A stretch of DNA of 64,000 nucleotides from Octopus sinensis (GCF_006345805.1 NW_021832531.1:372001-436000), one strand, 5' to 3'; shown: positions 9,401 through 59,984, counted from the first letter of the stretch. Translations and numbers: made by a program. The notes: generated from the sequence alone by a model not told the origin.

Positions 9401-10813
9401 ATGGTTGGTGTGTTTCTATCTTAAATATAACTTTCCGTTCCAACTTATTAAACAGTCTCATCGTAAATTCCACATACCAAGACACGGATCTCTTGCTTTT
9501 CTTCCCAGAAAGCGATGTTCAAGAACTGTAGGGAAAGTAAAAGCCTTTCCAAAGGACGACAAGACAAAGCCTGTTCATCCAACTGCATTCAGGGCTTTCA
9601 AAGCTGGAATGACTCATGTTGTCCGCCACGTAGTCAGGCCTGGATCAAGTATATATAACTCTGGACAAATATTTTTCAGAGGCTAATGACAAAGACATAG
9701 TAGAGGCTGTAACTGTCCTCGAAGCCCCACCAATGGTTGTTGTTGGAGTTGTTGGGTATATTAAAACACCGAGAGGCCTCAGACATTGTACAACAATATT
9801 TGCACATTTCTTATCGGATGAATTCCGTAGAAGATTCTACAAAAACTGGTATTTGCCAAATTGTGACTTTTTAGGTATGCGTCAAAGAAACGTGCTTTTG
9901 TGCGCTATGCTAATAAATGGAGTACTCCTGTTGGTGTGGCTAGCATTAAGAGACAATTTGAAAAAATTAAAAAGTATGCTTCAGTTGTCAGAATCATTGC
10001 ACATACGCAGGTAATATTTTATTTTAAAGTGTCTCCTGTTAGATGAGTAAGTTGAAATTGGGACAGAAAAAGTCTCATGTGATGGAGATTCAGTTAAATG
10101 GGGGAACTATTGAGGATAAAGTTGCCTGGGCTACAGAACACTTTGAAAAGGAATTGAAGATAAGTGAATTGTTTGCAGAGGGAGAAATGATTGATGTTAT
10201 TGGAGTTACCAAAGGGAAGGGGTTTCAAGGATGTATCAAGAGATGGAGGCCAAAGAAGATGCCTAGGAAGAGCAGGAAAGGTCTTAGGAAAGTTGCTTGT
10301 ATTGGAGCTTGGCATCCTGCACGAGTTTCGTATTCCGTAAGTCGTGCTGGACAAATGGGCTTCCACCACCGGACTGAGATTAATAAAAAAATATACAGGA
10401 TTGGGGATGCTATTGGCGATGATGAAAACGGAAGAGTTGCTCCGAAACAATTGACGGCCTATGATTTAACTGAAAAACATATTACTCCAATGGGAGGCTT
10501 TGTTCGTTACGGTGAAGTGAAGAATGACTATATCATGATCAAAGGATGCTGCATGGGACCACGGAAACGTACCATCACGCTTAGAAAAGTCTGATTTTAA
10601 TATATTTATAATTTAGTCTCTATTGACGCAAACCAGTAGAAGATCAAGGGAGGATGTCGATCTTAAGTTTATTGACACTTCGAGCAAATTTGGTCACGGA
10701 CGGTTCCAGACAAGTGACGAGAAGCTTAAATTTATGGTTTTTTATTACCGTTATTTTTTAAGGGTCCTCTGAAAAAACACTTGAATTCTGCTGAACCCAT
10801 TAAAACGGAATAA
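9401..10813 (+). CDS. RPL3: 60S ribosomal protein L3 (uL3)
   Basis: A single-codon ATG exon is followed by [76 protein letters not shown]-type motif and [15 protein letters not shown]. Stop at 10811-10813. Confidence 0.98.
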
Positions 10814-11427
10814 TTTTTTCTCTTATGATTGGTTTAGTTTTCTTTTGGTTTTATTTATCTTTTTGATTTTGTAAATTATTTGATACTTAATCTGAGAGCA
10901 CTTTTACGAGTAAAAAAATTTTTGTTATCTATCAATCTTAAATTAAAATAGCTTGGGTATACAACTCATATATAGTTTTGACTCAATAAAAAATTAGAAA
11001 AAATAAATATTATATTCATTAGCAAACATTCCTATACAATTATAAATTGAATCCTTTTTATTGCCAAAAAATCAAAACTAAAAAAGAAAGGAAAATCATT
11101 AACAGGGAGATAAAAAAGGCTCTTTCAGTGCTACCCAAACTATGATGATGAAACACACGTTTTCTTTAGGACCATCTGCGAGTCTTCTAGCCTTCCGTCA
11201 AGTTGTAATCCGTAAGCCAATTTTAACGCAAACGTCTTGTTTTTCCAACTATCCGATCAAGTAGTCACTCGCCTTCGTACCGAACTAACCCTCTTAATCA
11301 TATATGAGAACTGGCTGTACACAAATTCTGTACACGTAGATGTACCTCTGGACAAAATAGTTGCCTACATCAACCGTTCTACCGTGGTGGCTCATTCTAT
11401 GTCTGCTCCAGGAAAGGTTTTCAAACT

Positions 11428-12320
11428 GTGGGGAGGCGCACGGCCTCCACAACGGAGGCAGGAGAGGGGATGTAATCCGAACTCGTCTACAGTTCCCCCA
11501 CAGCGACATTTATGAGCCTGACAGATTTCAAGTCCGACACGTAAGGAGATAGCGATTTTTAGGCACTCGGAGTCAAAGAGGTTCCCAATTGAAAGAAGGG
11601 GGAAGGTATTAATCCATGCACCGCTGCCTGGGTGACAGCCTGCACGAAGGCAAGCGAGCATGTGTTGATTAAGTTTCGGAGTGAGTTCTTTGTACAAAGA
11701 ACAACATACAATCTCATCTCACTGGCGCTGGAAGTGCTCGGACTCAGCCCGCCTCGAGTCAAACCGGGCCTTCCATAAGAGACCTGCCGCGACAAAATCT
11801 GCAGACACTTTCCGTTCGGGAAGGTTTCGAAGAACGATGTCTGAGAGAGTGCGGGAGGCAGAATGAGAGGAAAGGTAAGCCGGAAGAGCCAAATCGAAAC
11901 AGGATCTGAAAATCAGATAGGAGGTCACTTCTGTGGAAACAGGGTGCACATCTTAGCGTATAAAGAACCTTAGGGGCGGAAAAGTGATTTCGTAAAAGGA
12001 AAAATGCGACATGAGGCTCGACTTTTTTAAGCCTCTTGATCATTTTAGAGAGATTCTAAATTTTTTCTGAAAATGAAGCTTCTAGAGCGGAAAGACCCAA
12101 GGGAGCCCCAAGATTGGATAGATTAGGCTTTTCGGCAATACGAACGTCTAGAAGAATATTGCGGCAAATGGAAGAGGCAGCAGAGAATAAACTTTGATGA
12201 AGGTGGATATTCACTATTTTGGATTTATTTGCATTAATGGATAGGCCAATGGCCGAGAGGGATGGAAGGATAGTCCGGAAGTCATTAAAAACCACTTCGA
12301 GAGGACCTTTGGTCATCAAA
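11428..12320 (-). mobile_element. CRE-like RLE non-LTR retrotransposon fragment (end of RT through CCHC finger), frameshifted
   Basis: EPHVAFFLLRNHFSAPK, LRAGCHPGSGAWINTFP, CRCGGTVDEFGLHPLSC. Close relative of 31920-33085. Truncated at both ends. Confidence 0.9.
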
Positions 12321-12458: not shown

Positions 12459-13500
12459 TTAACAATCATAAAGGTCCTCACCATGAGTAACTCGGGGATA
12501 ATATTTTTCAACCCGGCTAACAAATCCCATCAGTTTTTCTGGTGTTAAAACAGTTTTTGCGTCTCCTGCAATTTCTTTTAATATTCTTAGCCTATATTCA
12601 GAAATTGAAGAACCATCCGGAGTTTTGTTATAATTGAGAATTATTTGCATCTTTTCTCTTAGGATTTTTTACTTCTGATTTAAAAGTACTCCAGGCTAAT
12701 TCAATCGGGTTTAATAAGTAGGAATATGGAACCAGTTGTAAAGGTTTAATATTTTCTTCTTGCTCCACAACTGATTCCAATTGATTGTGAACATGAGCAT
12801 TGTCATTTATAAAAGTAGGGTCTACGAACAAAGACCTACATTCATTAATTCTTTTATCCATTCTTTATAATCTTCTTCTCTGTAAGAACCTCTTTTGCAT
12901 TGAAAATTAAGCAATGTTGAAACAGACATTGCACTTACACAATGTAAGTTAGAGCCTCTCAAATTTGGAGTCAAGACAAAAGAACGAGATTCTATTTTTG
13001 ATCGTCCTTCTTTTCTCTTACAATATAAATTAAAATTGGATTCATCGATCCAAATTAAAGTTCTTCCAGCAGACCTTGCTTTAAACAAGCAATCCAAATA
13101 ATGTATTCTTTTTTCTTTATTTTCAGATGAATTTACATTGGCTACTATTGGTCGAAAGGTTTTGAGAGAAATTAATTCCCCATCAAGCCAATTTTTTACT
13201 GTTGTAACAGACACAGAGATTGAATAATTATTTCGTATTTTTTCCACACATTCTTTCAAAGTGATCTGAGAATCAGCTCCAATCCAAATAATTAATTCAT
13301 TTATATTTATTTAATTTTTTGAATTTCTTTATTTCTTTTACCTCCTCTTGGATGTCTTTCTTTATCTTTATTTTCAATCCAATGATAAGCTGTTCTCATA
13401 TTCACTCCAAGAGAAGAACATAGAGACTGCCAATAGAACAATTAGCAATTTAACGGTTGATATAGATTTCTAAAAAGCCATTATTCTTAAGATACAACAT
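12459..13500 (-). mobile_element. IS630/Tc1-superfamily DDE transposase pseudogene
   Basis: N-terminal HTH-like GVNMRTAYHWIENKDKERHPRGG, then LIWIDESNFNL, DNAHVH...PYSYLLNPIELAWS (33 residues between the second D and E in this decayed copy). The C-terminus FVSRVEKYYPRVTHGEDL is in other frames. TIRs not found. Confidence 0.85.
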
Positions 13501-15120: not shown

Positions 15121-15344
15121 ATCTGTGATTGCACATTCTGTCAAAGTCAAATATGATATAGCTTTAATTTTGATTCATGGTCGATAATGATATATGCATT
15201 TAATTTTAAAGAGAAAAACATAGGATGAATTGAATTTCTTTATCGCGAATAATTGGGAGTTCATCATTGTTAATATTCTCGCTGTCGTTTTCATCAAGGA
15301 TATTCTTAATACGTGAGATTTTTGCCTTGAAGTTTTAATGGACC

Positions 15345-16885
15345 TCATCATGAATGTCGAGGACATTCGCGTTGTTCATTTTAATCAAAATGCAGAAAAT
15401 AATTTTTTGATTTTTTGGGGGAAGGTTTTAAGGACTTCATCATGTAAGTCGAGGACATTGTAGTTGTTCATTTTAACCAAAATGCAGAAAATTTTTTTTT
15501 AATTTTTTTGGGGGGAAGGTTTTAAGGACTTCATCATGTAAGTTGAGGACATTGTAGTTGTTCATTTTAACCAAAATGCAGAAAATTTTTTTTTAATTTT
15601 TTTTGGGGGGAAGGTTTTAAGGACTTCATCATGTAAGTCGAGGACATTGTAGTTGTTCATTTTAACCAAAATGCAGAAAATTTTTTTTTAATTATTTTTT
15701 TGGGGGGGAAGGTTTTAAGGACTTCATCATGTAAGTCGAGGACATTGTAGTTGTTCATTTTAACCAAAATGCAGAAAATTTTTTTTTAATTTTTTTTGGG
15801 GGGGAAGGTTTAAGGACTTCATCATGTAAGTCGAGGACATTGTAGTTGTTCATTTTAACCAAAATGCAGAAAATTTTTTTTTAATTTTTTTTGGGGGGAA
15901 GGTTTTAAGGACTTCATCATGTAAGTCGAGGACATTGTAGTTGTTCATTTTAACCAAAATGCAGAAAATTTTTTTTTAATTTTTTTGGGGGGAAGGTTTT
16001 AAGGACTTCATCATGTAAGTCGAGGACATTGTAGTTGTTCATTTTAACCAAAATGCAGAAAATTTTTTTTTAATTTTTTTTGGGGGGGAAGGTTTTAAGG
16101 ACTTCATCATGTAAGTCGAGGACATTGTAGTTGTTCATTTTAACCAAAATGCAGAAAATTTTTTTTTAATTTTTTTTGGGGGGAAGGTTTTAAGGACTTC
16201 ATCATGTAAGTCGAGGACATTGTAGTTGTTCATTCTAACCAAAATGCAGAAAATTTTTTTTTAATTTTTTTGGGGGGGAAGGTTTTAAGGACTTCATCAT
16301 GTAAGTCGAGGACATTGTAGTTGTTCATTTTAACCAAAATGCAGAAAATTTTTTTTTAATTTTTTTGGGGGGGAAGGTTTTAAGGACTTCATCATGTAAG
16401 TCGAGGACATTGTAGTTGTTCATTTTAACCAAAATGCAGAAAATTTTTTTTTAATTTTTTTTGGAAGGAAGGTTTTAAGGACTTCATCATGTAAGTCGAG
16501 GACATTGTAGTTGTTCATTTTAACCAAAATGCAGAAAATTTTTTTTTATTTTTTTTGGGGGGAAGGTTTTAAGGACTTCATCATGTAAGTCGAGGACATT
16601 GTAGTTGTTCATTCTAACCAAAATGCAGAAAATTTTTTTTTAATTTTTTTTGGGGGGGAAGGTTTTAAGGACTTCATCATGTAAGTCGAGGACATTGTAG
16701 TTGTTCATTTTAACCAAAATGCAGAAAATTTTTTTTTAATTTTTTTGGGGGGAAGGTTTTAAGGACTTCATCATGTAAGTCGAGGACATTGTAGTTGTTC
16801 ATTTTAACCAAAATGCAGAAAATTTTTTTTTAATTTTTTTGGGGGGGAAGGTTTTAAGGACCTCATCATGTAAGTCGAGGACATC
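15345..16885. repeat. Tandem array of a ~94-bp unit, about 16 units
   Basis: The anchor GAGGACAT recurs 17 times at a spacing of about 94-99 bp. Units differ mainly in T-run and G-run length. Confidence 0.97.
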
Positions 16886-16971
16886 GTATTGCCAATTTGA
16901 AGTTGGTGTGCACACACAGACAGACAGACAGACACACACCATACCATTTTATTATTAAGATAAAGTTTTAT

Positions 16972-24088: not shown

Positions 24089-25550
24089 CACCCCTCGACA
24101 TTAAAATCCGGACAGTTAATAAATCGTCATTTTTATTAGCAATTTTATTAAATTAAAAACTTAAGCATGCTAATATCATCTATTTTTTTAATTTTATAAT
24201 ATTTATTTATAAATCTTTTTAAAATATTGAGAATAAAGCAAAAACCGATTTTTTTAAGACAAAAAATTCCGGACAAATTTCAAAAAATAAAATATCAATA
24301 AGGAATATGCTTTCCTCTTGATTTATATAACTCTAAACTCCGAGTTTTCATCGAATTTATTAATTTTCGAATAAAATCAATTGGAACTTTATTCCAAATT
24401 TCTAATATTTTCTCCTTTTGTTGATGTTTATTTTTGGTCGATTTTCTGTATCATCCCTCGATAATTCATATTTAATTTTGACCAATATGTTCAATGGGAT
24501 TCATATCGGGGGATTGAGCCGGCCAATCGAGTAAATTAATTTTGTTTGCAGAAAAATACTCCTTTGTTGCTTTCGAAGTATGACATGGGGCATTATCTTG
24601 CTGGAATATGAAGCTGTTTAATCCCATTTTAATGGCTGATTTTTCCAGATTGTTAGCAAGAATGTTTATATATTGTCCTGAGTTTATTTTTTCATCAATG
24701 AAACATAACGAACCCATTCCAAAATATGAAAAGCATCCCCAGACCATAATTTTGCCACCACCACACTTAACAGTTGGCTGATAATTTGAATTTTTGAATT
24801 CATTTCCCCTTTTTCGGTATATAATTTTTTCTTTTACGTGCATAATAAACTTCAAAAGTACACTCGTCTGAAAAAATGACTGATCTCCATCCTTCATCAC
24901 ACATACCAACGAATATTTTCGATATTTCATATCTTTTGAGTATGTTTTTTTTACTCAACAATGGTTTTTTCTTTGCTACTCTTCCAAATAAACCGTTCTT
25001 ATTCAAATTGCGGGTAATTGTTCGCGGGGAAATTACTTTTTGAGTGATGGTTTTCATTTCTAGAGCGAGGTCTTTAGCAGATTTTTCACTATTGGCTTCA
25101 GAAAGTTCCACTAATATTTTGATTTCGTTTGTATTGAGTAATGTTGGTCTTCCAGACCCACTTTTTCTATAAATGGTTCCTGAGTTTATGTATTTTCGAA
25201 TAACATCGAAAACGGTCGATTTCGGAACTCCGAGGATATCAGAAATTCTCCTATAAGAAAAATTTTGCTGGTAATAAGAAATAATTTGTCCTTTACAAAA
25301 AGAATCCATTAATTTGTTCTAAAATATTAAAAAAATTAGCTCTTTTAACTATAATAGCAAAAGTGTCCGGAATTTTACGCCACTGAAAACACGTTTTATG
25401 CTTTTAAATATCGTTTTATAAAACTTTTGTAAATATATTTTTTTTAATATAAAAATATAGAAAAAAATATTATGCTCAAAGGTTTTTTTTCTAAATTTGA
25501 TAATAAAAATGACGATTTATTAACTGTCCGGATTTTAATGTCGAGGGGTG
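24089..25550 (-). mobile_element. Full-length Tc1 (DD34E) transposon with TIRs and TA TSD; transposase frameshifted
   Basis: A 50-bp perfect TIR (CACCCCTCGACATTAAAATCCGGACAG...) is flanked by TA at 24087-88 and 25551-52. Paired-type HTH with GRPTL, VIFSDE, QQDNAPCH...WPAQSPDMNPIE (34-residue spacing). At least two frameshifts. Confidence 0.97.
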
Positions 25551-31919: not shown

Positions 31920-33085
31920 ACTACGCAGGTTAGGGCGCCTTCCCAGATTGGAAGCAAAGTCTGGGTCGACGGCAGACCCGGCTAGGTTCCCGTTGGAGAA
32001 TGTGTCACAGCAGGTAGAATCTCATATAAGGGATCTTCCCTGCTCAAAGGGGAATGTAGTTAAGCCGTCAGGGCGTTTGCCGTCACCTCTGTCCAAACCG
32101 ACCGGTTCGAGGACGGACGGCACCCCGGCGGCTTCGAGGGAACTCTTCACAATGTCATTCAGTTCACTGTGGCGAGGCGCACGGCCTCCACTACAGAGGC
32201 AGGAGAGGGGATGTAACCCGAACTCGTCCACAGATCCGCCACAGCGACATTTGTGGGCCTGACAGATTTTGAGCCCGACACGTAAGGAGATGGCGATTCT
32301 TAGGCACTCGAAGTCCAGGAGGTTCCCAATTGAAGGGGGGAAGGCATCAATCAAAGCACTGCTGCTTGGGTGACAGCCTGCACGAAGGTAGGCGAGCCTG
32401 TGTTGGTTAAGTTTTGGAGTGAGTTCTTTGTACAAAGACCGACATACAATCTCGTCCTACTGGCGCTGGTTATCCTTGGACTCAGGCCGCCTCGAGTCAA
32501 ATCGGGCCTTCCATAAGAGACCTACCGCGACGAAATCTGCAGACACTTTCCGTTCGGGAAAGTTTTAAAGAACGATGTCTGAGAGAGGGCGGGAGGCAGA
32601 ATGAGAGGACAGATAAGCTGGAAGAGCCAAATCGGAACAGGATCTCAGACCAAGGCCACCCCAGCGCACAGGTAAGGTCGCCTGAGATTAGCCAGAATCG
32701 TCGAAAGCAAGATTGCATAGAGAGCTCATACCAAGCTTAAGGATGTAATCGAAATCAAATAGGAGGTCGCTTCTGTGGATACAGGGTGCACATCTTAGCA
32801 TATAAAGGGTCCTTGGGGGCAGAAAAGTGATTTCGCAGGAGGAAAAATGCGACGTGAGGCTCGATGTTTTCAAGCCTCTCGATTATTTTAGCGAGATTCG
32901 AAATTTTTTCAAAAAATAAAGCTTCAAGGGCGGAAGGACCCATGGGAGCCCCAAAAATTGATAGATTGAAGTTTTCGGTGATACGAACGTCTGGAAGAAT
33001 ATTGCAGCAAAAAGAAAAGGTTGCAGAGAATAAACTATGTTGAAGGCCGATGTTCACGATTTCAGATTTTTTTGCGTTGGCAGCT
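31920..33085 (-). mobile_element. CRE-like RLE retrotransposon fragment, frameshifted
   Basis: [68 protein letters not shown]. Same subfamily as 11428-12320. Confidence 0.92.
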
Positions 33086-33418: not shown

Positions 33419-36400
33419 CCTTTAGTTACTAATAACTAACTAATCTATATAATTCTCCTTCTTTTTGGACCGTTGCACTGGATCTGCGTATTCTTCTCCT
33501 CTAACACTTCATATGACACATGAGACACATCTTACGGCACATCTGGTGGATCTGTTGTTTCTCTAGCCAATTTTAGGAGGTGGTTGGTGGCCCTCGAAAC
33601 TTGTTCCTCATGTTTTTCAATTTTCACTCCATGTTTATGTTCAACAAGCATGGCCTCCAATGTCTTCTTAATCGTCAGCGATTGTATATAAGATCTAGTG
33701 GAAGCATCCAACTTCAGTCTTCTTAATAATAAAATGGTATGGTGTGTGTCTGTCTGTCTGTCTGTGTGTGCACACCAACTTCAAATTGGCAATACGATGT
33801 CCTCGACTTACATGATGAGGTCCTTAAAATCTTCCCCCCCAAAAAAAATTAAAAAAAAATTTTCTGCATTTTGGTTAAAATGAACAACTACAATGTCCTC
33901 GACTTACATGATGAACTTAAAATCTTCCCCCCCAAAAAAAATTAAAAAAAAATTTTCTGCATTTTGGTTAAAATGAACAACTACAATGTCCTCGACTTAC
34001 ATGATGAAGTCCTTAAAACCTTCCCCCAAAAAATCAAAAAATTATTTTCTGCATTTTGATTAAAATGAACAACGCGAATGTCCTCGACATTCATGATGAG
34101 GTCCATTAAAACCTTCAAGGCAAAAATCTCACGTATTAAGAATATCCTTGATGAAAACGACAGCGAGAATATTAACAATGATGAACTCCCAATTATTCGC
34201 GATAAAGAAATTCAATTCATCCTATGTTTTTCTCTTTAAAATTAAATGCATATATCATTATCGACCATGAATCAAAATTAAAGCTATTATCATATTTGAC
34301 TTTGACAGAATGTGCAATCACAGATTGCACGACTTTGAATAGAGTGTGCAATTAACAGATTTTGAAAAACCACTTTGATAGTTGAAACCACATTAGCACA
34401 ATCATTAACACAATTTACCACCAATTGACGCACTACCTTGAATAGAGTGTGCAATTAACAGATTTTGAAAAACACTTTGATAGTGATTTTGAAAAACATT
34501 TATTAGTTTGTTGACTTTACTTAGTAGTTTGACCCTACTTTGATAGTTGAAACCACATTAGCACAACCATTAACACAATTTACCACCAATTGACAGCGCA
34601 ATCAGAAGAATTTGCGTAAAAATATTAACTATTTACTTGAGTTTTTCGTAAAGATAGAATTTATTTTCGGTATGCCTCTTTTCCTAAACTTTTTTATTAT
34701 TCAAAAATAATTTTTTAAATAGATAACCGAAGGAGGAAAAACGAAGCTGAAGAAAAAACGGTCAGCTTAATAAGGTAATTAATTAAATCTTTTTTGTGTG
34801 TCGCTTTCTTGCCTGCCGCATCTCCCCCTGCCCCATTTCCGCCAGTAAAAAACAAAAAAATAAAAAAGAAAAAAAAGGAAATTACAAGGAAAAATGAAAA
34901 AATTAAATATAAAAAAATAGACCACAAAAAATGAAAAAAAAAGTTTGCAATGACAATAAACAAGGCCAGGGACAGTCATTAAAGGTAGTTGGGTTATTTT
35001 TAAAGAGTGAGTGCTTTTCACATGGACAGCTGTATGTGGGATGCTCGAGGTAGGCAGAAGAGAAAATTTATTCATATATGCCAAGGAAGGACGGACGACA
35101 AACATCGTTTATCAACAGGCGATAGAATAGGGTTACATTAAACCAGGTAGTTTTATACATCTACATAAACTTATAGTTGTTTGATGAAACAGGCCCTCCG
35201 CAGGAGCTAGGTCGCGGTGAGCGAAGCGAGCTGCCGAGCTAGTTCCATATAAGACTTATAGAATTTAGAAACTATCCCGTCCCATATGAGGACAATGGGG
35301 ATTATCGTTACCTTCGCACCGTGGATTTGAGATAATTCTCCAGCAAGAAGATCATATTTATGCAGTTTTTCTACTTCCACTTGCTTTAACATGGCGTGGG
35401 AAGTAATTCCGACTTCAATTAGAGTGATTTCGTTTTATCAAGGACAAAGATATCTGGTCTATTGTTTTTTACATGAACATCTGACTGCAAGGTGGTGTCC
35501 ACTCTTATCTCCACTTTATGATTTGAGCTAACTGACTGGACTGTGTGTGACTTTAACCTTTTGGTTTTCCTGATTCCATATTGGCGGCAGAGATGCAAAT
35601 GGATGCATCTTATAACTTCATTATGTCTTCTGGTATAATCACTGTTCAGCATTCTGCTACATCTTGTAGCCATGTGATCAACAGATTTTTTAGCTTGATT
35701 ACAATGATTGCACATTCCTCCGTTATCGTTGAAAAATATATTTCGATCTTGAATAATACAATACATTGCTTCTGATCTCGGACTGTTGTTTCCATTCACT
35801 AGCCATTCCGTAGACATATTGATGTCAACATTCTGATCCTCACAACATTTGAAAAGTACGGAATGCAACATCTTCGATTTAATAATCTTCATTAGACTCT
35901 TTTGTTGATTCTCCTTAATTATGTTTATATTCAATTCTGAAGGATCTTCAATATTGTATTTGAAGGTAAGAAATCTTGCGATGGTGGCCATATGTGTTTT
36001 ATTTATTTTCAAGACCCGCAAGATTCCAGCCTTTCTGAGACACATTGCAGACTTTCTTTCAAGATCAGTCAAAAATTGATATAACATGCATTCACTTTTA
36101 TGGACAATTGAATTAAGTCCTCTTCCAAAGTTAGATCTGCTTATATATATAATCTTTCTTTATTTGCAGGTTTCAGATGAACATGTAATTTAGATAGAAT
36201 CCTTCGAACTTCGGTATCAATGGCTTGAAACTCGTGTGGCTCAATGTCTTATTAGTCCAATATAGTAATTGTAAAGTGATAGAGAATATTCATTAATCGT
36301 CTTGAATAGATTCACTGCATTTAGCTTCGTGTTCACTAAACTTTCAATTCTCTTCTTTACATTTTCTGCAATTTTTTTCATAACTTCATGCTTCAATACA

Positions 36401-37625
36401 TTGCTTCCTTTATCCTCCAGAACTCCCAGATATCGATATCCATCATATCTGTCAAGACTTCTAGTTTCTTTAACATAATTCAAATTAATTGCAGATTTCT
36501 CAGAATTCCTCCTGAGACCAACAACACTGAAGTATTCATCAATACTTTCCATCATCCTCAAGATCGTATCTTCTTTCTCAGCAAGTATTTTCAAATCATC
36601 AATAAATAGCAGATGATTAGTTGAGTATGTTATTTGAGACGGGTCATTATGGTCAATATAGATTTTAGGAAACTTGTGATTTAGTATCCTGCTCAACGGA
36701 TCCATTGCCAGCGTAAAAAGTTGGGGAGATAGTGAATCTCCTTGAAGAATTCCTCTTTCTAATTTCACTGTTCCAATTCTATTTACATTGAGATTCAGAA
36801 TCACTTTCCATTTACTTATCAAACTTTTAATAAACTTCACAATCCACTCAGGGAGTCCAGAATAATCCAATACCAGCGATAAAAATTCATGGTTAACAGA
36901 ATCAAATGCTTTGTTTATATCAATCCATGTCGCAAATAAGTTATTTCCATAGTGATTGTTAATGCACTGGTTTATTAAAGCCTGTTCTTTTGCACCCTGG
37001 CAATGTCTTCTAGCTCCCAGTTGGTTATCCGAAACAAGACCAAAAGCTTCAATGTAGTCTGTAAGTTTAGTGTTGACACATTTTGTAACAAGTTTGTATA
37101 GTATAGGCATGCATGTAATCGGACGCAAGTCATTAGGTGATTCACAACAAGCTTTTTTTGGGATGAGAAATGTAACCCCAGTGTAAAACCACTGACCAGG
37201 ACAGTAATCTCCATTAATAATCTTCAAAATTTCATCACATAAATAATTATGGAGGGATTCAAACTTCTTAATAAAAAAGCAGTATACTCCATCGCATCCA
37301 GAAGTCTTCCAGTTTGGCGCGTAGTTAATAATACTTTTGATAAATTCTGGTTTGATGTCAACTGGGGATTGTTCTACGCCAGTTATGCGTTTTCCAACAA
37401 CATCAGTAGCAATATGATTCTCATCTTTTTTCCATATCTTCTCCCAAAATGACAAACATTCACCTTCCGACAACGTATATTTATTATCTTCTCCAGCATT
37501 CAGGTTTCGGTAAAACCTCTTTCTGTTGAGTTCAAAACAAAAATTGTCTCTTCTAAATGATTTTCGTGACTCATAAATCGAAATCCTTTTTTCCATGATT
37601 TTTATTCTATCTTCAATTAACGTAC
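33419..37625 (-). mobile_element. R4/Dong-like RLE non-LTR retrotransposon, 5'-truncated, 12-bp TSD, interrupted by a Helitron
   Basis: RT motifs NDLRPITCMP, WIDINKAFDSV, GILQGDSLSP, LLFIDDLK; finger CNHC...HMATRC, YTRRHNEV, NNRPDIFVLD, IEVGIT. The direct repeat ATTTACTTCCAA is at 33407-33418 and 37626-37637. Confidence 0.92.
33721..35242 (+). mobile_element. Non-autonomous Helitron (copy 2), 3 tandem units
   Basis: Same TCTTAATAAT/(GTCT)n 5' end, hairpin+CTAG 3' end and helicase tail as 14259-16960. Its removal restores the R4-like reading frame. Confidence 0.95.
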
Positions 37626-40845: not shown

Positions 40846-41708
40846 ATGGAGAGGTCCGCTCATGTCTCGCCTCGCAATGAGATTCATTCAACTACAAGTA
40901 ATAATATTCTTAAGTACGCACTTTATTAGCTGCTTTTATCCACAATTTATACTTAGACTCACTTGAAATCTTCCAACATAATGATATCTATTCATATCCA
41001 ACAGGACCCGGTGGTGATACGTCTCTCGTTGAAAGTTTTCCTACAAGTCCAAGAAAAAAGAAAAAGAAACGTGTTCTCTTTACAAAAAACCAAACTTATG
41101 AACTTGAAAAAAGATTCAGTCTTCAGCAATATCTTTCGCCTTCGGAAAGGGATCAAATAGCCAGTCAGTTGCATTTGACGCCAAATCAAATAAAAATTTG
41201 GTTTCAAAATCATCGGTACAAATTGAAAAAAACAAGAATGCAGCAGAATTATTATATTCCACCAAATTCATACTATCAAAATCCCTCGAATCAAATTTCA
41301 AATGCACTCTTCACTCCTTACAGCCAACTTGAACAAAATTTAGGATTGGGAATGCAATTCAATCAATCTTATAATCAAGGAATGGATTTTTTTTCTCAGG
41401 CACATCATGTGAATGAAGACATGAAACCTTCTAACATTGCCTATCAAGCAAACATGACTAATATTTATGATCCCAGGAATTTTCTAAATCACACTACAGA
41501 GGATATTAAAGGAGTCTATAATTTTGCTGTTAATAACCAAGATCAGCACAATATGAAGGAAAGACAATATTTTCCCCAAACAATTCTTTTTCTTACAATC
41601 TGCGCTATTGGAATTAACATTTTTAACTCTTTAAATATTATTAGAAATTTTATTTTAGTTTATTTTAGACAGAGTAATGTTAATAATATGATCAAAATAA
41701 AATTATGA
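40846..41708 (+). CDS. NKX2-2: NK2-class homeobox protein, NKX2-2/vnd-like
   Basis: Homeodomain [58 protein letters not shown] (about 41058-41237), with the NK2-diagnostic HRYK and the TYELE typical of NKX2-2. First exon and 3' end approximate. Confidence 0.82.
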
Positions 41709-50099: not shown

Positions 50100-52610
50100 A
50101 ATTAACAGATAGTTATTAACTAACCAAATTTCCGGCCTCGTAAATGGAAACACAGTTTCCACGTACTATGGCCAAGGAAATCCTTTCGAAAAGCCACTTG
50201 GACTCGCGTGGGTCTCCCCGTTTATGGGAGATCATGCGGCCAAGCTTTTTTAGAAAGGAAAGAGACTTTTCGCCGATGACGCCGGAAGTCTCGACGGCGA
50301 TGGGAGTGAACAGATACCGTTCAGAGAGCTCCTTGTACTTTCCAATCTTCATCTTCTCGGTTTGCGAGAGACTGAGCCAGGCTCGACAGCTGAAGAAGGA
50401 AGGTTGAGCTCCGAGAAAGTGTGTCTGAACACGTCGCATCCCATAACAGAGACTTGCCGAACTCAAACGGGAAAGTCGATAGGCCGTCGGGTCTTTTTCC
50501 GTCTCCCCTCGCAAGCCCGACGGGTTCGAGGATTGATGGAATCCAGCGGCCGTGAGCCCCCTCTGAATAACGTCGTTAAGTGCTGCATGGCGTGGTGCGC
50601 GCCCTGCACTGCGACGACAGGAAAGGGGATGTAGACCAAAACGGTCAATGACAGCACCACAACGACATTTGTGTATTTCGCAGATTTCCAATCCAAGACG
50701 CAATGATAAACCAATTCGTAGGCAATCTTTGTCTAGTAGGTTACCGGTGGAAGGGACAGGGAGAGCATCCAGCCAGGCCCCACTCCCTGTGCAGCAGCCT
50801 GCGCGGAGACATGCAAGTCTGTGCTGATCGAAATTTTTGCGTAGATGTACGTCAAGAGCTTCACAAGAAATGGCATCCCATTGAGCTTGGATACACGGGT
50901 CACTGGGTCTTTTGTTGTACAATGAATCCCACAGGTCCAAAGCGGCCACGTGATCAACTGACATTTTTCGTTCGGGTAGGTTTCTGAGAACAATGTCAGT
51001 GAGGACACGGGATGATGCCGTTGACGAAAGGAAAGCAGGAAGAGCGATAGACACGGGAGAACGGAGTCCAATCCCACCGCGGCTTACAGGCAGGGTGGAT
51101 TGAATCCAACCAAGAGGGTCGAAACGTACGTTGCATAGCGACTCTGCTCGGACTTCAGAATATTTTCAATAACGGAAAGGAGATTTTGTTCGTGAAAACA
51201 CGGAGAGCTTCTTAATGTATATAGGAGCTTCGGAGTTGAAAAGTAATTACGGAGAAGAAAGAACCCGACATGAGCGTCGATGAGAGAGAGTCTTTGAATA
51301 ATGCATGACAGAACAGCTGCCTTGTCAATAAGAGTTTGAGACAAAGCCTCGCGACCAATTGGGGAGCCAAGGATGAGGAGGTTTTTTTTATCAGTGATCC
51401 GCACGCCTTTTAAAATATCTTCCAGAACGGCCATAGTTTCGACAAAAATTCCGTGTGGGATATTGAGATTTATAACTTCGGATTTGGCAGAGTTTATCTC
51501 AAGACCAATAGATGAAAGGGCAGGGATAATTACGCGAAGGTCCTCTAGGACAGAGCATGGTGGTCCACATATTGTGGCGTCATCAAGATACCAGATGTTT
51601 ATAGGGGAAAGGACAGAGTGGGCAATGGAGTTGACGCAGATTGCAAACAACAGAGGACCAAGAGGATCTCCCTGTTGTACACCGGTCGAAGATACGATAA
51701 CGGAATCACCGAACAAGAGGAGACTTGGTTGAGAGTAAGATAGATGGACCAGACGATAAGCCGAGGGGGCAAGAGCATAGCAGGACTCCAACAGGAAATC
51801 TCTTCTGACTGAATTAAATGCGTTGGAGATGTCCAGTTTAACCAAAATAAATTCTTCTGGAGTCTCCATTAGTTCCCTTACAGCATGGGCGGCCGACTCA
51901 CAACCTCCGCTGATTCCAACTCCCAATTGCGCGGGCAGAAATTTTTGGGCCAGCTCGGGGACTACTGCGTGGCAGACAAGCTTTCCGGCCAATCTGCGAA
52001 AAATATTGCCGACGGCGATCGGTCTAACACCATTATCTTTCTTCCCCAGGGCGGTGAGATTAGCAGAAAAGAAAATCGTCCGTGCAAAGTCAGGTAAATC
52101 ACCCCCGATAAGGCGGTTGCATAGATCCGTAATAGAAGACAATAGTTGGCGACCAGCCTCAGCAGTTAGGGGAGAAATCAGATCTTTAATGTGTCCTGGT
52201 TTCAAACCATCGATGCCCCCACTGCTGCTTGGGGAGAAACTTTTGAGTGCCTTCACAACTTGTTCCGCAGAAACTAGTAGTTGTGGAAATGCAATCGAAT
52301 CAATAGCAGGTGGTGTGCGGTAATTAACGGGATGCGGAGGGTGTTTAGACCTCAGATTAGACAAACCGATGGAGAGGGAGATAACAGTCGGTTCGAAGAG
52401 GCAACAAGTCTGACCGCTCCACGGACATCACCATCCATTAATTTACTAGTTACCCTGCGGCGAAAGTAGTCGTTGTCAGGGGAAGTTTCACTGTCCACGG
52501 GAGAAGGGGCATCACTTTTGTGAGAGTCAGAACGGGAGGAGTCTGAGCGAAGAGAGTCAAACTGGGAAGAGAACAATGTTTTTCGTCTTTCTTGAGGGTC
52601 TTATTTATTT
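50100..52610 (-). mobile_element. Longest CRE-like RLE non-LTR retrotransposon copy (RT + CCHC + RLE), frameshifted
   Basis: DGDVRGAVRL, SSGGIDGL, GVRPIAVG, QLGVG, KLDISNAFNSV, GVQQGDPLGP, WYLDD, CRCG..IDRFGLHPLSC, FTPIAVETSG, FERISLAIVRGN. Split into three frames (52352-52576, 51084-52364, 50116-51054). Confidence 0.95.
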
Positions 52611-55749: not shown

Positions 55750-56780
55750 TTAAAATGTCAAATTCTTATCGCGGTAGTACATTCTGTTGGTATTATTCCC
55801 CGAAACTCCTAATTTTTGAAAAAATTTCTGTCTGACACGCGTTGCTTGTTTCATAGCACGAACTCTACTACGTACATCTGCTGATAAACATCAGTCAGAT
55901 CTAAATACCAGGCTTAACATTTTTTTCCATTGTCTTGAATGTATTTGCTCTGACTACACTCCCCTCTCTTTGCCTAAAAATACGACGAAGCAGTCGATGA
56001 GTTAGCTTGGTTCCTAAAATAAGCAATAATTAATAACCATTGGGAAGGACGAGTTGGAGATACTCATTTACTCTGATAGGCTCGATATCTCCAATCTCGT
56101 CACCTGAATGTGTCTCGTGGTCTGGATAACTTGTACTAAAATTATAAAGGATGTAAAATATAAACGAATAGTCGTAGAAATCAATATAAAATTCGACTGT
56201 ATCGTCTTCAAACCTCATCCTACAGTGCTGTTTGACTTGCATGTGAAGCTGAACTGCTGCCGTTGAGCCAAACACTCTTCCACACCAAATACAGCAGTTG
56301 TCAAAATCAATGGTCTCACCTGAACTGATAAATTATTACAAACCAATTAGATTTAAGAGTCCGTTCATGTTACATACATATGCAGCGTCTGGAATAAAGA
56401 AGCTATGAGTCACAGACATATGTTCCAGATTTTCTTTTATATTTTGAGATAAAAATCCACAAAAACAGCATTTATTAACATCATATTGGTATTCCTCGTA
56501 TTTAAGAATAACTAAGACTAGTAATAATTGTAAACTACTTTCTTCGGGAGTTTCGCTGATTAAATTATTCTCCATTTCCTTTTCTTCAAAAGACATTGAA
56601 TCTTTCTAAGTCATTTAGATAGTCTAGTTTAACCCTCAAATTAAAGTCTTCGAGAGTTATGGGGGATATTCCAAGAGATTTAGCAGACAAGTTGTACTTG
56701 TGCCATTCGGATTTGTAGTGGCTTCTTTGAAGATCTGGAATATCAAATTCCACCAAGCATGTTCTACAAGTCAACGTCAT
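55750..56780 (-). CDS. ZNF622: Pre-60S maturation factor ZNF622/Rei1
   Basis: TCRTCLVEF...QRSHYKSEWHKYNL, CCFCG...NLEHMSVTHSFFIPD, CIWCGRVF.S.AAVQLHMQVKQHCRM, FYDYS, LVLPNG..LG. Confidence 0.93.
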
Positions 56781-57829
56781 TGAAAATAATATATCATGCA
56801 ATTATTATTGTTTGAATTAAAAAAATTATATCACTTAAAAATTATTAACAAGGATTTTATGGAAAATCATTCCATATTTATTTATAACTGATAAAACAGA
56901 AATGCTACGACTTTTTGCAGCTACTATTATAACATAAAGTAATGTCCCTCCTTTAGATCGATCTTTTTCTATTTTTACTTCCAAAAATTTCTAATTCGAG
57001 TTCTACACATTTAAGACTATAATTTTTGTGCGTTTTTTACTTCCACAGATTTTAAATTTTTAATCACGTAATCTTCACTTGAACAAACCATATCATGTTT
57101 TTTTATTGAAATGGAAAATATTGGTCATGTTATACTGAATTTCCAACTCAGCGAAGATTTTATATTCACTTGTACTCCCGCAAAATTGTTAGACATAATA
57201 TTCTATAAATAAAAAGTTTTAAGTTATTTAGAGCTATTCATTTTAGACCTCTGGTATAAATTCATACAGAAACATTTCAGAATCTCATTATGTATTCCGG
57301 TAAAGTCTAAATTTAGCATTATATTGCATCTAGTTGCAATTCAATCCACTGCTTTATTTGAAAATTTGCAAAGGAGAGCTCTGAATTAATAAATTTGTGT
57401 TTTGAAATAAAAATATTGGATCAGATCGAAGCGATATTTCTTTCATAATCCATTATTAAGGTTGCAGAGATATCAAAATAATTTCGAATTTAGGGATTTT
57501 TGGTATTTGACAAAAACTGTTTATCAGCAATTAAAAAAATTTTTAATATCCCCTGATATGTAAAGTTTATATTTATAGGCCAAAAATAAAGTTATTCAGG
57601 TCATATAGTAAAAAAATTGTCCTCAGTCAAATTTGATATATTTAGAATGATAAAATAAAATTAGATATATTGACCTAAATGATGAATAAAAATTAATTAA
57701 ATATGACACTAGTAAACTGAATTTAGAAACAAAATATAAAAATAGCAAAAATATCTTCGTAATTAATAAAAATTAATTAATTATCTCAATATATAAGGGA
57801 ATAGAAACCGAACTGATAAATGAAGTTAT

Positions 57830-58195
57830 ATGGTAATGTTCACCAAAGTGAGAAATATAGTGATTATTGGAGTCCTTTTTACATGCCAACTTGCTAACTG
57901 TCTGGATAAACAAAAATGTACCGAAGCAATAAATCAACTGAAATGCATAAACGACAGTATTAATATGGCAGAAAAAGCAATACTAAATCAACTAAAACTA
58001 TCGGAATTTGTTGAAATATATGAGAGATGCCTAAGCGAAGGAGCTAGTTGTGTATATGATTTTAATTTTAAAGGTAAACGAGACGGTTTCGACTATTTCG
58101 GGAATCTGAGATTGGGGAAAAAACAAATAAACGTTTTTTTACTTTATCACATTATAGGGAAATTGAGAAACGTTAATTTAATACTAACAGACTAA
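57830..58195 (+). CDS. Candidate secreted neuropeptide precursor (amidated LRLamide)
   Basis: N-terminal signal-peptide-like segment, then ...YDFNFK-GKR-DGFDYFGNLRL-GKK, i.e. Gly + dibasic amidation/cleavage sites. Confidence 0.6.
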   Translation: MVMFTKVRNIVIIGVLFTCQLANCLDKQKCTEAINQLKCINDSINMAEKAILNQLKLSEFVEIYERCLSEGASCVYDFNFKGKRDGFDYFGNLRLGKKQINVFLLYHIIGKLRNVNLILTD

Positions 58196-58428
58196 CTTCA
58201 AATTATTAATTTCTCATATTACTAATTTGCTAATACAACTAATAAAATAATTTTTACTATTTCTTTATTATTAAAAAGATTTCATCTGTCGATTTTGGCA
58301 TAATTAGTAGGCCAACTACAAGTCAATAAGGTCAGCTCAACAAAAAATTATTATTCTGTTATAAAAATACTATAAATACATTTCTAGTTTGAAAAGCGTT
58401 CGAAAAGAGGAATTCATATTGATTCAAA

Positions 58429-59984
58429 TCCGAGGTAAACATTTGGTACCTCGATGATGTTACTCTCGGCGGGGCTTTGGAGACCGTCAGGAAGGATATG
58501 GAAAAAATTATTTCTGGTTTTGCGTCTATTGGGCTCGCTTTGAATGGATCCAAATCCGAGCTGATATGCTTGTCTGCGAGCCCTTCGGAATTCAAATTAA
58601 TTTTTTCGACCTTATCTCGCCATATTGAAGGCCTGGGCATCACCCAGCTTGATGACCTCATCATTCTGGGTTCCCCAATCAATAGCAAGGCTACTAAGAA
58701 GGCTTTATATGGCAGGCTCGAAGAATTGGAAACTTTAATCTCCCGCATTTCCAACTCGAATCCCATTTAGGCCTTTTTTTGCTAAAGAACTATCTCTTCA
58801 TACCGAGGCTAACTTATCTCTTGCGCTCATCGCCGTGCTTTCTCGAACAAAATCACTTATTTCGTCTCGACAACATGGTCTCCGAAGCTCTTGAACTCCT
58901 CGTAAATATCAAATTCAAACCTTCAGACATGCGACGGGTTAATTTACCTATTCGTTACGGGGGCATCGGCATTCGTTCTTGTGTTGATTTATCCTTCCAT
59001 GTTACCTTTCCTCGTTGTCTGCCTCTGCTACTTCCTTCAACTCTGTTCTCTTCCCCTTCCCTGAACAGCCCGAGTTGTTGGAATATGCGGCGGGTGTCAA
59101 CATGTGGATTTCTCGTGGGCTTAAAATCCCGGACGTCCCCTCAGTTCAAAAGAACTGGGATGATATACATTGTTTGCATACACTCGAAGATATCCGCCTA
59201 CGTGCTGACCAGTTTTAGTTGGCAAGCATCAATTGTGCCTGTCAACCCCACTCGGCCGATTGGCTTGACGCTTTGCCGATTTCCTCTGCTGGAATGTTGC
59301 TGGACGACGAATCTGTCCGCATCGGAATCTGTTTACGGCTTGGCATAGAGATTTGCCTGCCACATCAGTGCAGATGCGGAAAGGTCATTGACAGGAGAGG
59401 GCTACACTCCCTCTCTTGTCGCCTCAGTACCGGCCGTATACCCAGACATGCCGCCTTGAATGATATTGTCAAGCGCGCGCTCAACGCCGCTGGATTCCCT
59501 TCGGTCCTAGAGCCGGTTGGTTTAGACCGTGGCGACGGAAAACGTCCCGACGGGTCCACGCTATTCCCGTTCAAGGGGGGACTCGCTCTCGTTTGGGACG
59601 TGACCTGTGTCGACTCGTTTTCCTCGTCATCTCTCATGGACTCTGCCTCCCGCCCTGGCTCAGCCTCCGCACATGCCGAAACAAAAAAAATAACAAAGTA
59701 TGCCTCATTGGAGAACACCTGCCTTTTCGTCCCCCTGGCTTTCGAAACGAGCGGGATAATCGGCCCAAAAGCTCTTGAGTTCCTTTCGGAAATCGGCTTG
59801 ATGATCTCAAGGAAGAGTCACGAGAGACGTGAGTCTAGTTGGCTTTTTCAGCGCATTTCGCTCGCGATATTGCGCGGAAACTGCCTATCTATTCGCGCGT
59901 CCTCTCAATCAAAGAATTAACATCATAAATTTACTTAATTAAAAAAAAAAATTTTTTTTGAAAAAAAAAAAAAAAAAAAAAAAA
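58429..59984 (+). mobile_element. CRE-like RLE retrotransposon, 5'-truncated at the RT YLDD motif, poly(A) tail, 11-bp TSD
   Basis: [50 protein letters not shown]. Long A-runs at 59941-59985. ATTGATTCAAA is at 58418-58428 and 59985-59995. Internal stops. Confidence 0.95.

Follow-up and report, generated by a model that had tools for sequence, protein, structure and literature searches.

Metazoan preprohormones of amidated peptides are small proteins that begin with a signal peptide and carry dibasic sites on both sides of the peptide, with a Gly before each. The peptides of the CCK/sulfakinin family share the C-terminal core Y-G-(H/W)-M-(R/D)-F-amide, and placozoans use secretory peptides for peptidergic signalling without neurons. 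Dicyemids are spiralians of about 30-40 cells and, to our knowledge, represent the most extreme body-plan reduction among bilaterians. The myomodulins of molluscs and annelids are defined by -(M/L)-L-R-L-amide or -M-R-L-amide ends in multiple tandem copies, and their precursors contain several tandem 7-8-mers with the end -M-L-R-L-amide, e.g. GMPMLRLamide, GLQMLRLamide, and AMPMLRLamide (PMC4200219). In Chlamydomonas an amidated peptide is released from cilia (PMC6919629). Adult dicyemids have no recognised neurons (PMC6543705), and antibodies against neuropeptides and transmitters stain the apical cells of their infusoriform larvae (PMC6854800). Here, an open reading frame (ORF) from a 64,000-nucleotide stretch of DNA, referred to as the window, is compared with these systems.

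The window corresponds to VCDQ01002911.1:372001-436000, part of a 500,255-bp contig in the Octopus sinensis assembly GCA_006345805.1; positions 1-20594 were checked and are 100% identical. It is compact, has a GC content of 33%, and contains several LINE fragments. The RPL3 gene of the window (9401-10813, plus strand) encodes the full 405-aa protein only when six introns of 52, 31, 26, 32, 28, and 26 nt are removed. The best match of this protein, at 98% identity, is a record named [quoted passage not shown], whereas the RPL3 proteins of other animals, molluscs included, are only 62-68% identical over the aligned matches. Among animals, introns this short are reported only for dicyemids and myxobolid myxozoans (PMC13644364), with a median of 27 bp in dicyemids (PMC6543705). 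Dicyema japonicum was collected from the host Octopus sinensis; the parasite's genome has been characterised as compact and LINE-rich, with 36.7% GC, 49% repeats, and mini-introns (PMC6736024). The 26-32-nt introns, the divergent RPL3, and the compact, LINE-rich layout thus identify the contig as dicyemid and not octopus; judged by these sequence characters, it is parasite DNA that was co-assembled into the octopus genome. A myxozoan source of the mini-introns is unlikely in view of the octopus host, the LINE-rich contig, and the lack of cnidarian affinity of RPL3, the matches listed for which are mostly bilaterian. The earlier note on this DNA, made from the sequence before its origin was traced, had spoken of a strongly simplified animal and was right in this respect. 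A 500-kb parasite contig filed and partly annotated as octopus is a solid by-product of the analysis. It was also observed that positions 1-20597 of the window, with RPL3 and a P-type ATPase gene, recur 33.4 kb upstream on this contig (337954-359147 of the record) over at least 20.6 kb with 98.9% identity; this second copy represents either a haplotype that was left uncollapsed and joined in tandem, or a segmental duplication of recent origin.

The ORF listing of the window contains one ATG-initiated frame of 121 aa (MVMFTKVRNIVIIGVLFTCQLANCLDKQKCTEAINQLKCINDSINMAEKAILNQLKLSEFVEIYERCLSEGASCVYDFNFKGKRDGFDYFGNLRLGKKQINVFLLYHIIGKLRNVNLILTD) that ends with a TAA stop at 58193-58195. The features assigned to it and to its surroundings are collected in Table 1. 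Its first 24 codons can be divided into an n-region MVMFTKVRN with the basic residues K6 and R8, an h-region IVIIGVLFTC, and a c-region QLANC, and signal cleavage is predicted after A-N-C. Four cysteine residues, an even count, are left past the predicted cleavage site. These are C30, C39, C67, and C74, all in the pro-region, with the spacing C-x8-C followed by C-x6-C. A single-sequence AlphaFold2 model placed helices at residues 34-54 and 57-73 at low confidence (mean pLDDT 45) and gave no confident fold. The pro-region leads into the first putative convertase site (FNFK-G-K-R), and the 11-mer lies between this site and a second one that is again preceded by Gly (K-R DGFDYFGNLRL-G-K-K). For the amidated 11-mer, a monoisotopic mass of 1314.636 and an [M+H]+ of 1315.643 were computed. 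All elements that the earlier note had described, namely K6/R8, the stretch IVIIGVLFT, ANC, the Cys region, GKR, DGFDYFGNLRL, and GKK, are found at the positions it gave. The last 23 residues of the ORF, which follow GKK, are hydrophobic and encoded by AT-rich DNA, and if unspliced this tail resembles translated non-coding DNA. Upstream and downstream of the ORF, a TATA-like box and an AATAAA motif are present; TATA-like motifs are frequent at 17-18% GC, and from base frequencies the chance occurrence of AATAAA within 100 nt of such AT-rich DNA is estimated at roughly 0.3. An upstream ATG at 57820 opens an out-of-frame reading frame of 25 codons (57820-57897, plus strand), which runs into the beginning of the candidate ORF, and it is relevant only with a transcription start 5' of 57820.

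Table 1. Features of the candidate locus and of its surroundings, in window positions
Feature	Position	Strand	Basis or remark
Candidate pre-pro-peptide ORF	57830..58195	+	ORF length versus chance; first-codon-position G; no paralogue by blastn/tblastn in the window
Signal-peptide-like segment, codons 1-24	57830..57901	+	Sequence reading and heuristic rule
Pro-region, codons 25-81, 57 residues	57902..58072	+	ORF translation; C-terminal end ...VYDFNFK
Gly-Lys-Arg, predicted amidation donor and dibasic site 1	58073..58081	+	Sequence reading; follows FNFK
Predicted peptide DGFDYFGNLRL, 11-mer	58082..58114	+	Sequence reading
Gly-Lys-Lys, predicted amidation donor and dibasic site 2	58115..58123	+	Sequence reading
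Alternative 37-nt GT..AG intron, frame-shifting and peptide-removing, feared in the earlier note	58074..58110	+	Judged unlikely
Candidate 25-nt mini-intron GTTTTTTTACTTTATCACATTATAG	58133..58157	+	Splice-model score 12.5, training median 12.1
TATA-like box TATATAAG	57790..57797	+	33-40 nt 5' of ATG; possible core promoter, by inference only
AATAAA, possible poly(A) signal	58241..58246	+	46 nt past TAA stop; weak
ZNF622/REI1-like C2H2 gene with mini-introns	56030..56801	-	Pfam zf-C2H2_2; ZNF622 homologues at E = 1e-26 to 1e-31
5'-truncated LINE fragment	58429..59920	+	Starts inside the reverse-transcriptase domain; about 230 nt 3' of the ORF and separate from it
GC-rich LINE fragments (45-55%), AT-rich reverse-transcriptase ORF, Tc1/mariner-type remnants	50116-52364 (-), 58429-59920 (+), 32022-32435 (-), about 11300-12000, 36241-37596 (-), 24472-25309 (-), 12822-13259 (-)		

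The likelihood that such a frame arises by chance was assessed by several measures. Over both strands of 64 kb, simulations that follow the local base composition predict 0.03-0.26 ATG ORFs with a length of 121 aa or more. An excess of G at the first position of codons, which is a universal coding signature, amounts to 0.116 in the ORF compared with 0.013 +/- 0.04 in the stop-free null (P = 0.005-0.007), and this value lies inside the range of the real exons of the window, the median of which is about 0.07. In 100-bp bins, the GC content is 0.29-0.35 across most of the ORF and 0.28 in the last bin, compared with 0.17-0.18 in the flanking bins. A heuristic signal-peptide rule, demanding a basic n-region, at least eight hydrophobic residues, and A-x-C ahead of the cleavage site, was passed by the candidate alone among the window's 87 ATG ORFs with 60 aa or more, and by 0.7-1.2% of simulated stop-free ORFs. 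Paired G[KR][KR] motifs 5-30 aa apart occur at three loci in the 40,223 residues that make up all of the window's open frames with 40 aa or more, and twin Gly-dibasic sites appear in 0-0.27% of simulated stop-free ORFs. Because both rules were set post hoc, after the ORF had been seen, a joint probability of the features is optimistic. The codon-usage likelihood ratio of the ORF is -0.07 (z = 1.06), with a null of -0.13 +/- 0.06 and real exons between -0.135 and +0.04; this test, trained on about 2,000 codons, is uninformative since real exons and null overlap. These sequence statistics speak against an origin of the ORF by chance alone, also after a hundredfold concession, and the ORF is probably a real protein-coding gene. 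The precursor layout proposed in the earlier note, a signal-peptide-like start and a Cys pro-region followed by two Gly-dibasic sites that bracket the 11-mer, is thus statistically unusual and bears a coding signature.

Since the donor-like sequence AAAG/GTAAAC, with its GT at 58074-58075, had been named in the earlier note as a point where splicing might remove the peptide, candidate introns were scored with donor, acceptor, and length models. These models were derived from 68 putative introns of the window, which are GT..AG, 20-40 nt long, at most 33% GC, and link long open frames; the size range seen is 21-40 nt. The 37-nt candidate that starts at this donor scored 4.3, which is below the 5th percentile of the training introns, and has 46% GC compared with at most 33% in the training set. 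The donor therefore makes a poor intron, and the peptide codons are most likely exonic according to the splice model. A much better candidate is the 25-nt mini-intron listed in Table 1, the score of which is reached by only 123 of the 6239 GT..AG pairs in the window. It sits past GKK, so the peptide stays intact if it is spliced; the product would then be shortened to 103 aa with the end ...LRLGKKQINGN and a TGA stop at 58164-58166, and the hydrophobic tail would be lost. A further, in-frame candidate of 27 nt at 58047-58073 scored 11.5, and its removal would also leave KR-DGFDYFGNLRL-GKK intact.

Relatives of the ORF were searched for in several databases. A word-indexed search of 5.8 billion proteins gave no homologue at E <= 10, and an exhaustive phmmer search of 1.84 billion representatives (E <= 1e-3) gave as sole match a 532-aa tandem-repeat translation, which aligns to the hydrophobic N terminus eight times and was rejected as spurious. 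Pfam yielded only a sub-threshold match to Importin_rep_6, the PDB sequences nothing better than E > 0.6, Rfam no match, and a back-translation scan of metagenomes 251 pattern matches, none of which was confirmed. No second copy was detected by blastn and tblastn in the window or in two further loci of the same genome. Conservation of the precursor or of the peptide in relatives was not found in databases that appear to hold no second dicyemid, and the RPL3 search likewise returned no second dicyemid-like match. The lack of homologues thus reflects missing data and not a shown absence. The exact 121-aa product is absent from protein records, and the description of the locus as unannotated is borne out. 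This carries no weight in itself because an annotated protein is likewise absent from the databases for the conserved ZNF622-like gene next to it, and the annotation of the contig is sparse.

With the generic metazoan preprohormone of amidated peptides, the ORF shares the signal-peptide-like start, the dibasic sites on both sides of the peptide with a Gly before each, the small size (103-121 aa), and an even number of cysteine residues in the pro-region. It differs in having no sequence relative, in its single peptide copy, and in coming from an organism without recognised neurons. The suggested relation to myomodulins is supported in one part only. The LRL-Gly end, and with it a predicted C-terminal -LRL-amide, is present and is shared with the spiralian peptides of molluscs and annelids by motif alone, whereas family membership is not supported, with a single xNLRL-G and no detectable homology. 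In the one 11-mer of the ORF, Asn stands where myomodulins have Met, and the pro-region contains cysteine residues; the ORF has no second -LRL-G site, no other copy was found by tblastn in the window, and neither the word-indexed search (E <= 10) nor the exhaustive search (E <= 1e-3) revealed homology to spiralian myomodulin precursors. The resemblance to CCK/sulfakinin, also proposed earlier, does not hold since the defining C-terminal core is absent and there is no homology. In the ORF the corresponding stretch is D-Y-F-G-N-L-R-L-G, with no Met, no terminal Phe, and a spacing that is off by one, so the resemblance amounts to three scattered residues. What is shared is Asp88-Tyr89 near the predicted amidated end, which could in principle be a sulfation site.

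Vasopressin/oxytocin-neurophysin precursors were included in the comparison because of the immunostaining reported in PMC6854800. They were rejected, as the ORF has no C-x4-C nonapeptide after the signal, no neurophysin domain in Pfam, and four cysteine residues in the mature part compared with 14. For the C-x6-C loop, which the earlier note had considered as a second, disulfide-looped peptide, we know of no defining motif of allatostatin-C/somatostatin-type or vasopressin-type peptides that is present. With Chlamydomonas and placozoans there is a likeness of setting only, namely signalling by amidated peptides where ciliated cells or organisms have no neurons, as a dicyemid peptide would also have to do, and no sequence relation, the dicyemid peptide being a predicted one. 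Family-level assignments therefore fail, and the generic class of amidated-peptide precursors stands as a hypothesis for which the ORF is a well-formed orphan candidate.

If the ORF is a peptide precursor, processing could proceed as follows. The 24 N-terminal residues would direct the chain to the ER and be cut off after Ala-Asn-Cys, and the pro-region would form two disulfides. A subtilisin-type proprotein convertase would cut past Lys83-Arg84 and Lys97-Lys98, a carboxypeptidase would trim the basic residues, and PAM (peptidylglycine alpha-amidating monooxygenase) would form the C-terminal amides from Gly82 and Gly96. This would release DGFDYFGNLRL-NH2 together with an N-terminal fragment that contains cysteine residues and ends ...FNFK-NH2, an example of which is CLSEGASCVYDFNFK-NH2 with one disulfide and 1678.71 Da. 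Transcription, secretion, cleavage, amidation, and a receptor of the predicted peptide are all steps that we infer from the sequence. Adult dicyemids lack neurons, so the term neuropeptide is a misnomer, and a paracrine, hormone-like, or larval role is proposed instead. The signal might be received by one of few rhodopsin- or secretin-type GPCRs; in Dicyema sp., four GPCRs of the secretin family have been reported along with two rhodopsin-family matches, the nearest relatives of which are neuropeptide receptors (PMC6543705). Together with the immunoreactivity of the larval apical cells (PMC6854800), these receptors make such a ligand biologically plausible. A possible site of action would be the infusoriform apical cells, where the peptide may steer host-finding or the release of germinal cells. 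It is doubtful, though conceivable, that dicyemids keep a working amidated-peptide signalling of this kind, with DGFDYFGNLRL-NH2 as a lineage-specific ligand sensed by one of their few GPCRs.

The preferred reading sees in the ORF a genuine dicyemid gene, restricted to this lineage and not annotated to date, for a processed amidated peptide; it is given a probability of about 0.4 from the features described. Points against it are the missing homologues, a codon-usage value that does not stand out from its null, the post hoc signal-peptide rule, the lack of a confident fold, the AT-rich tail, and searchable literature in which the processing enzymes were not found for dicyemids. In addition, many short amidated neuropeptides derive from multi-copy precursors and the ORF has one copy, and the signalling repertoire of dicyemids is drastically reduced. 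The same gene-level evidence (ORF length, signal-peptide rule, first-position G) would equally be accounted for if a real dicyemid gene encoded a small secreted protein with disulfide bonds that is not processed to an amidated peptide, for instance a developmental signal, or a host-interaction or adhesion factor that is released into the renal sac of the octopus. The Gly-dibasic triplets would then occur by coincidence in a protein rich in Lys, or serve at most for furin-type trimming. Parasites often secrete lineage-specific proteins containing cysteine residues, and the 57-residue, four-Cys pro-region with its predicted helices resembles a small folded domain rather than a spacer. The single copy of the peptide also fits this explanation, as does the literature, since no mention of PAM, prohormone convertases, or carboxypeptidase E in dicyemids, and no other sign of a regulated secretory or amidating pathway, was found in the searchable papers and supplements. 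The placement of two G[KR][KR] motifs exactly on both sides of a C-terminal 11-mer, an arrangement as rare as three loci in 40,223 residues and less than 0.3% of simulated ORFs, argues against it, and a secreted protein without amidation is considered a substantial, if tentative, possibility.

A non-functional origin, with the ORF as a fortuitous or decaying frame in the AT-rich DNA between the ZNF622-like gene and the truncated LINE, is unlikely. The missing homologues and database records and the codon-usage value inside the null would be compatible with it, and by extrapolation chance alone should yield tens to hundreds of ORFs this long in a genome of about 67 Mb. Moreover, the feature rules are post hoc, and TATA and AATAAA motifs are uninformative at such a base composition. 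However, the joint occurrence of length, first-position G, GC rise, signal-like start, and twin Gly-dibasic sites should arise in far fewer than one instance per genome if the sequence were random, an estimate that already grants about a hundredfold for flexible definitions. It is very improbable that the gene is real but the peptide stretch is intronic or altered by splicing, either through 58074/58110, which would yield the end ...FNFKDWGKNK before a stop, or through loss of 58074-58157. Measured against eukaryotes in general, AAAG/GTAAAC makes a good donor, and roughly one in three dicyemid introns is longer than 30 bp (PMC6543705), but the low score and high GC content of the 37-nt candidate are accompanied by a purine-rich acceptor, and an intron of 84 nt would be far beyond the range of the window. 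Hardly credible, finally, is an octopus host gene, for which the simplified-animal context would be wrong. The deposition of the contig and the name of the RPL3 record would speak for it, but the RPL3 introns, of a size reported among animals only for dicyemids and myxobolid myxozoans (PMC13644364), the distance of RPL3 from that of any other animal, and a LINE-rich, compact contig of about 33% GC that matches the description of D. japonicum (PMC6736024) all oppose it.

If the amidated-peptide reading is true, the phylum would have in this ORF its first described precursor of a peptide hormone, and with it a case in which peptidergic signalling outlasts the loss of a nervous system. A genuine precursor would provide a concrete molecule for how cells communicate after neuron loss, a ligand for orphan receptors, and a marker for cells presumed to be sensory in the dispersal larva, the neuropeptide staining of whose apical cells has so far been without a known endogenous ligand (PMC6854800). 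Genomes with mini-introns are badly served by standard annotation, and small genes are therefore missed systematically.

In the immediate neighbourhood of the ORF, the ZNF622-like gene is oriented divergently, with a spacer of about 1 kb and 17-29% GC. On the other side, the LINE fragment aligns by BLASTP with the reverse-transcriptase ORF at 51087-52364 (minus strand) from residue 253 of 426 onward. The ORF was rejected as part of a repeat or transposon, given its single copy, the presence of only short AT-rich repeats around it, and the start of the LINE at about 58429. Several of the GC-rich LINE fragments have a common C-terminal Cys-rich motif CRCG...HPLSC, and the window also contains a separate AT-rich reverse-transcriptase ORF and Tc1/mariner-type transposase remnants. 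Together, these elements account for most GC peaks of the window's composition profile. A 95-bp satellite is present at 15332-16888 in 16.4 copies with 96% identity, and a shorter inverted array of the 95-bp unit is found 17 kb away at 33793-34116. An NK-type homeobox exon lies at 41169-41708 on the plus strand; few homeobox genes are expected in a dicyemid, 16 being reported for D. japonicum (PMC6736024).
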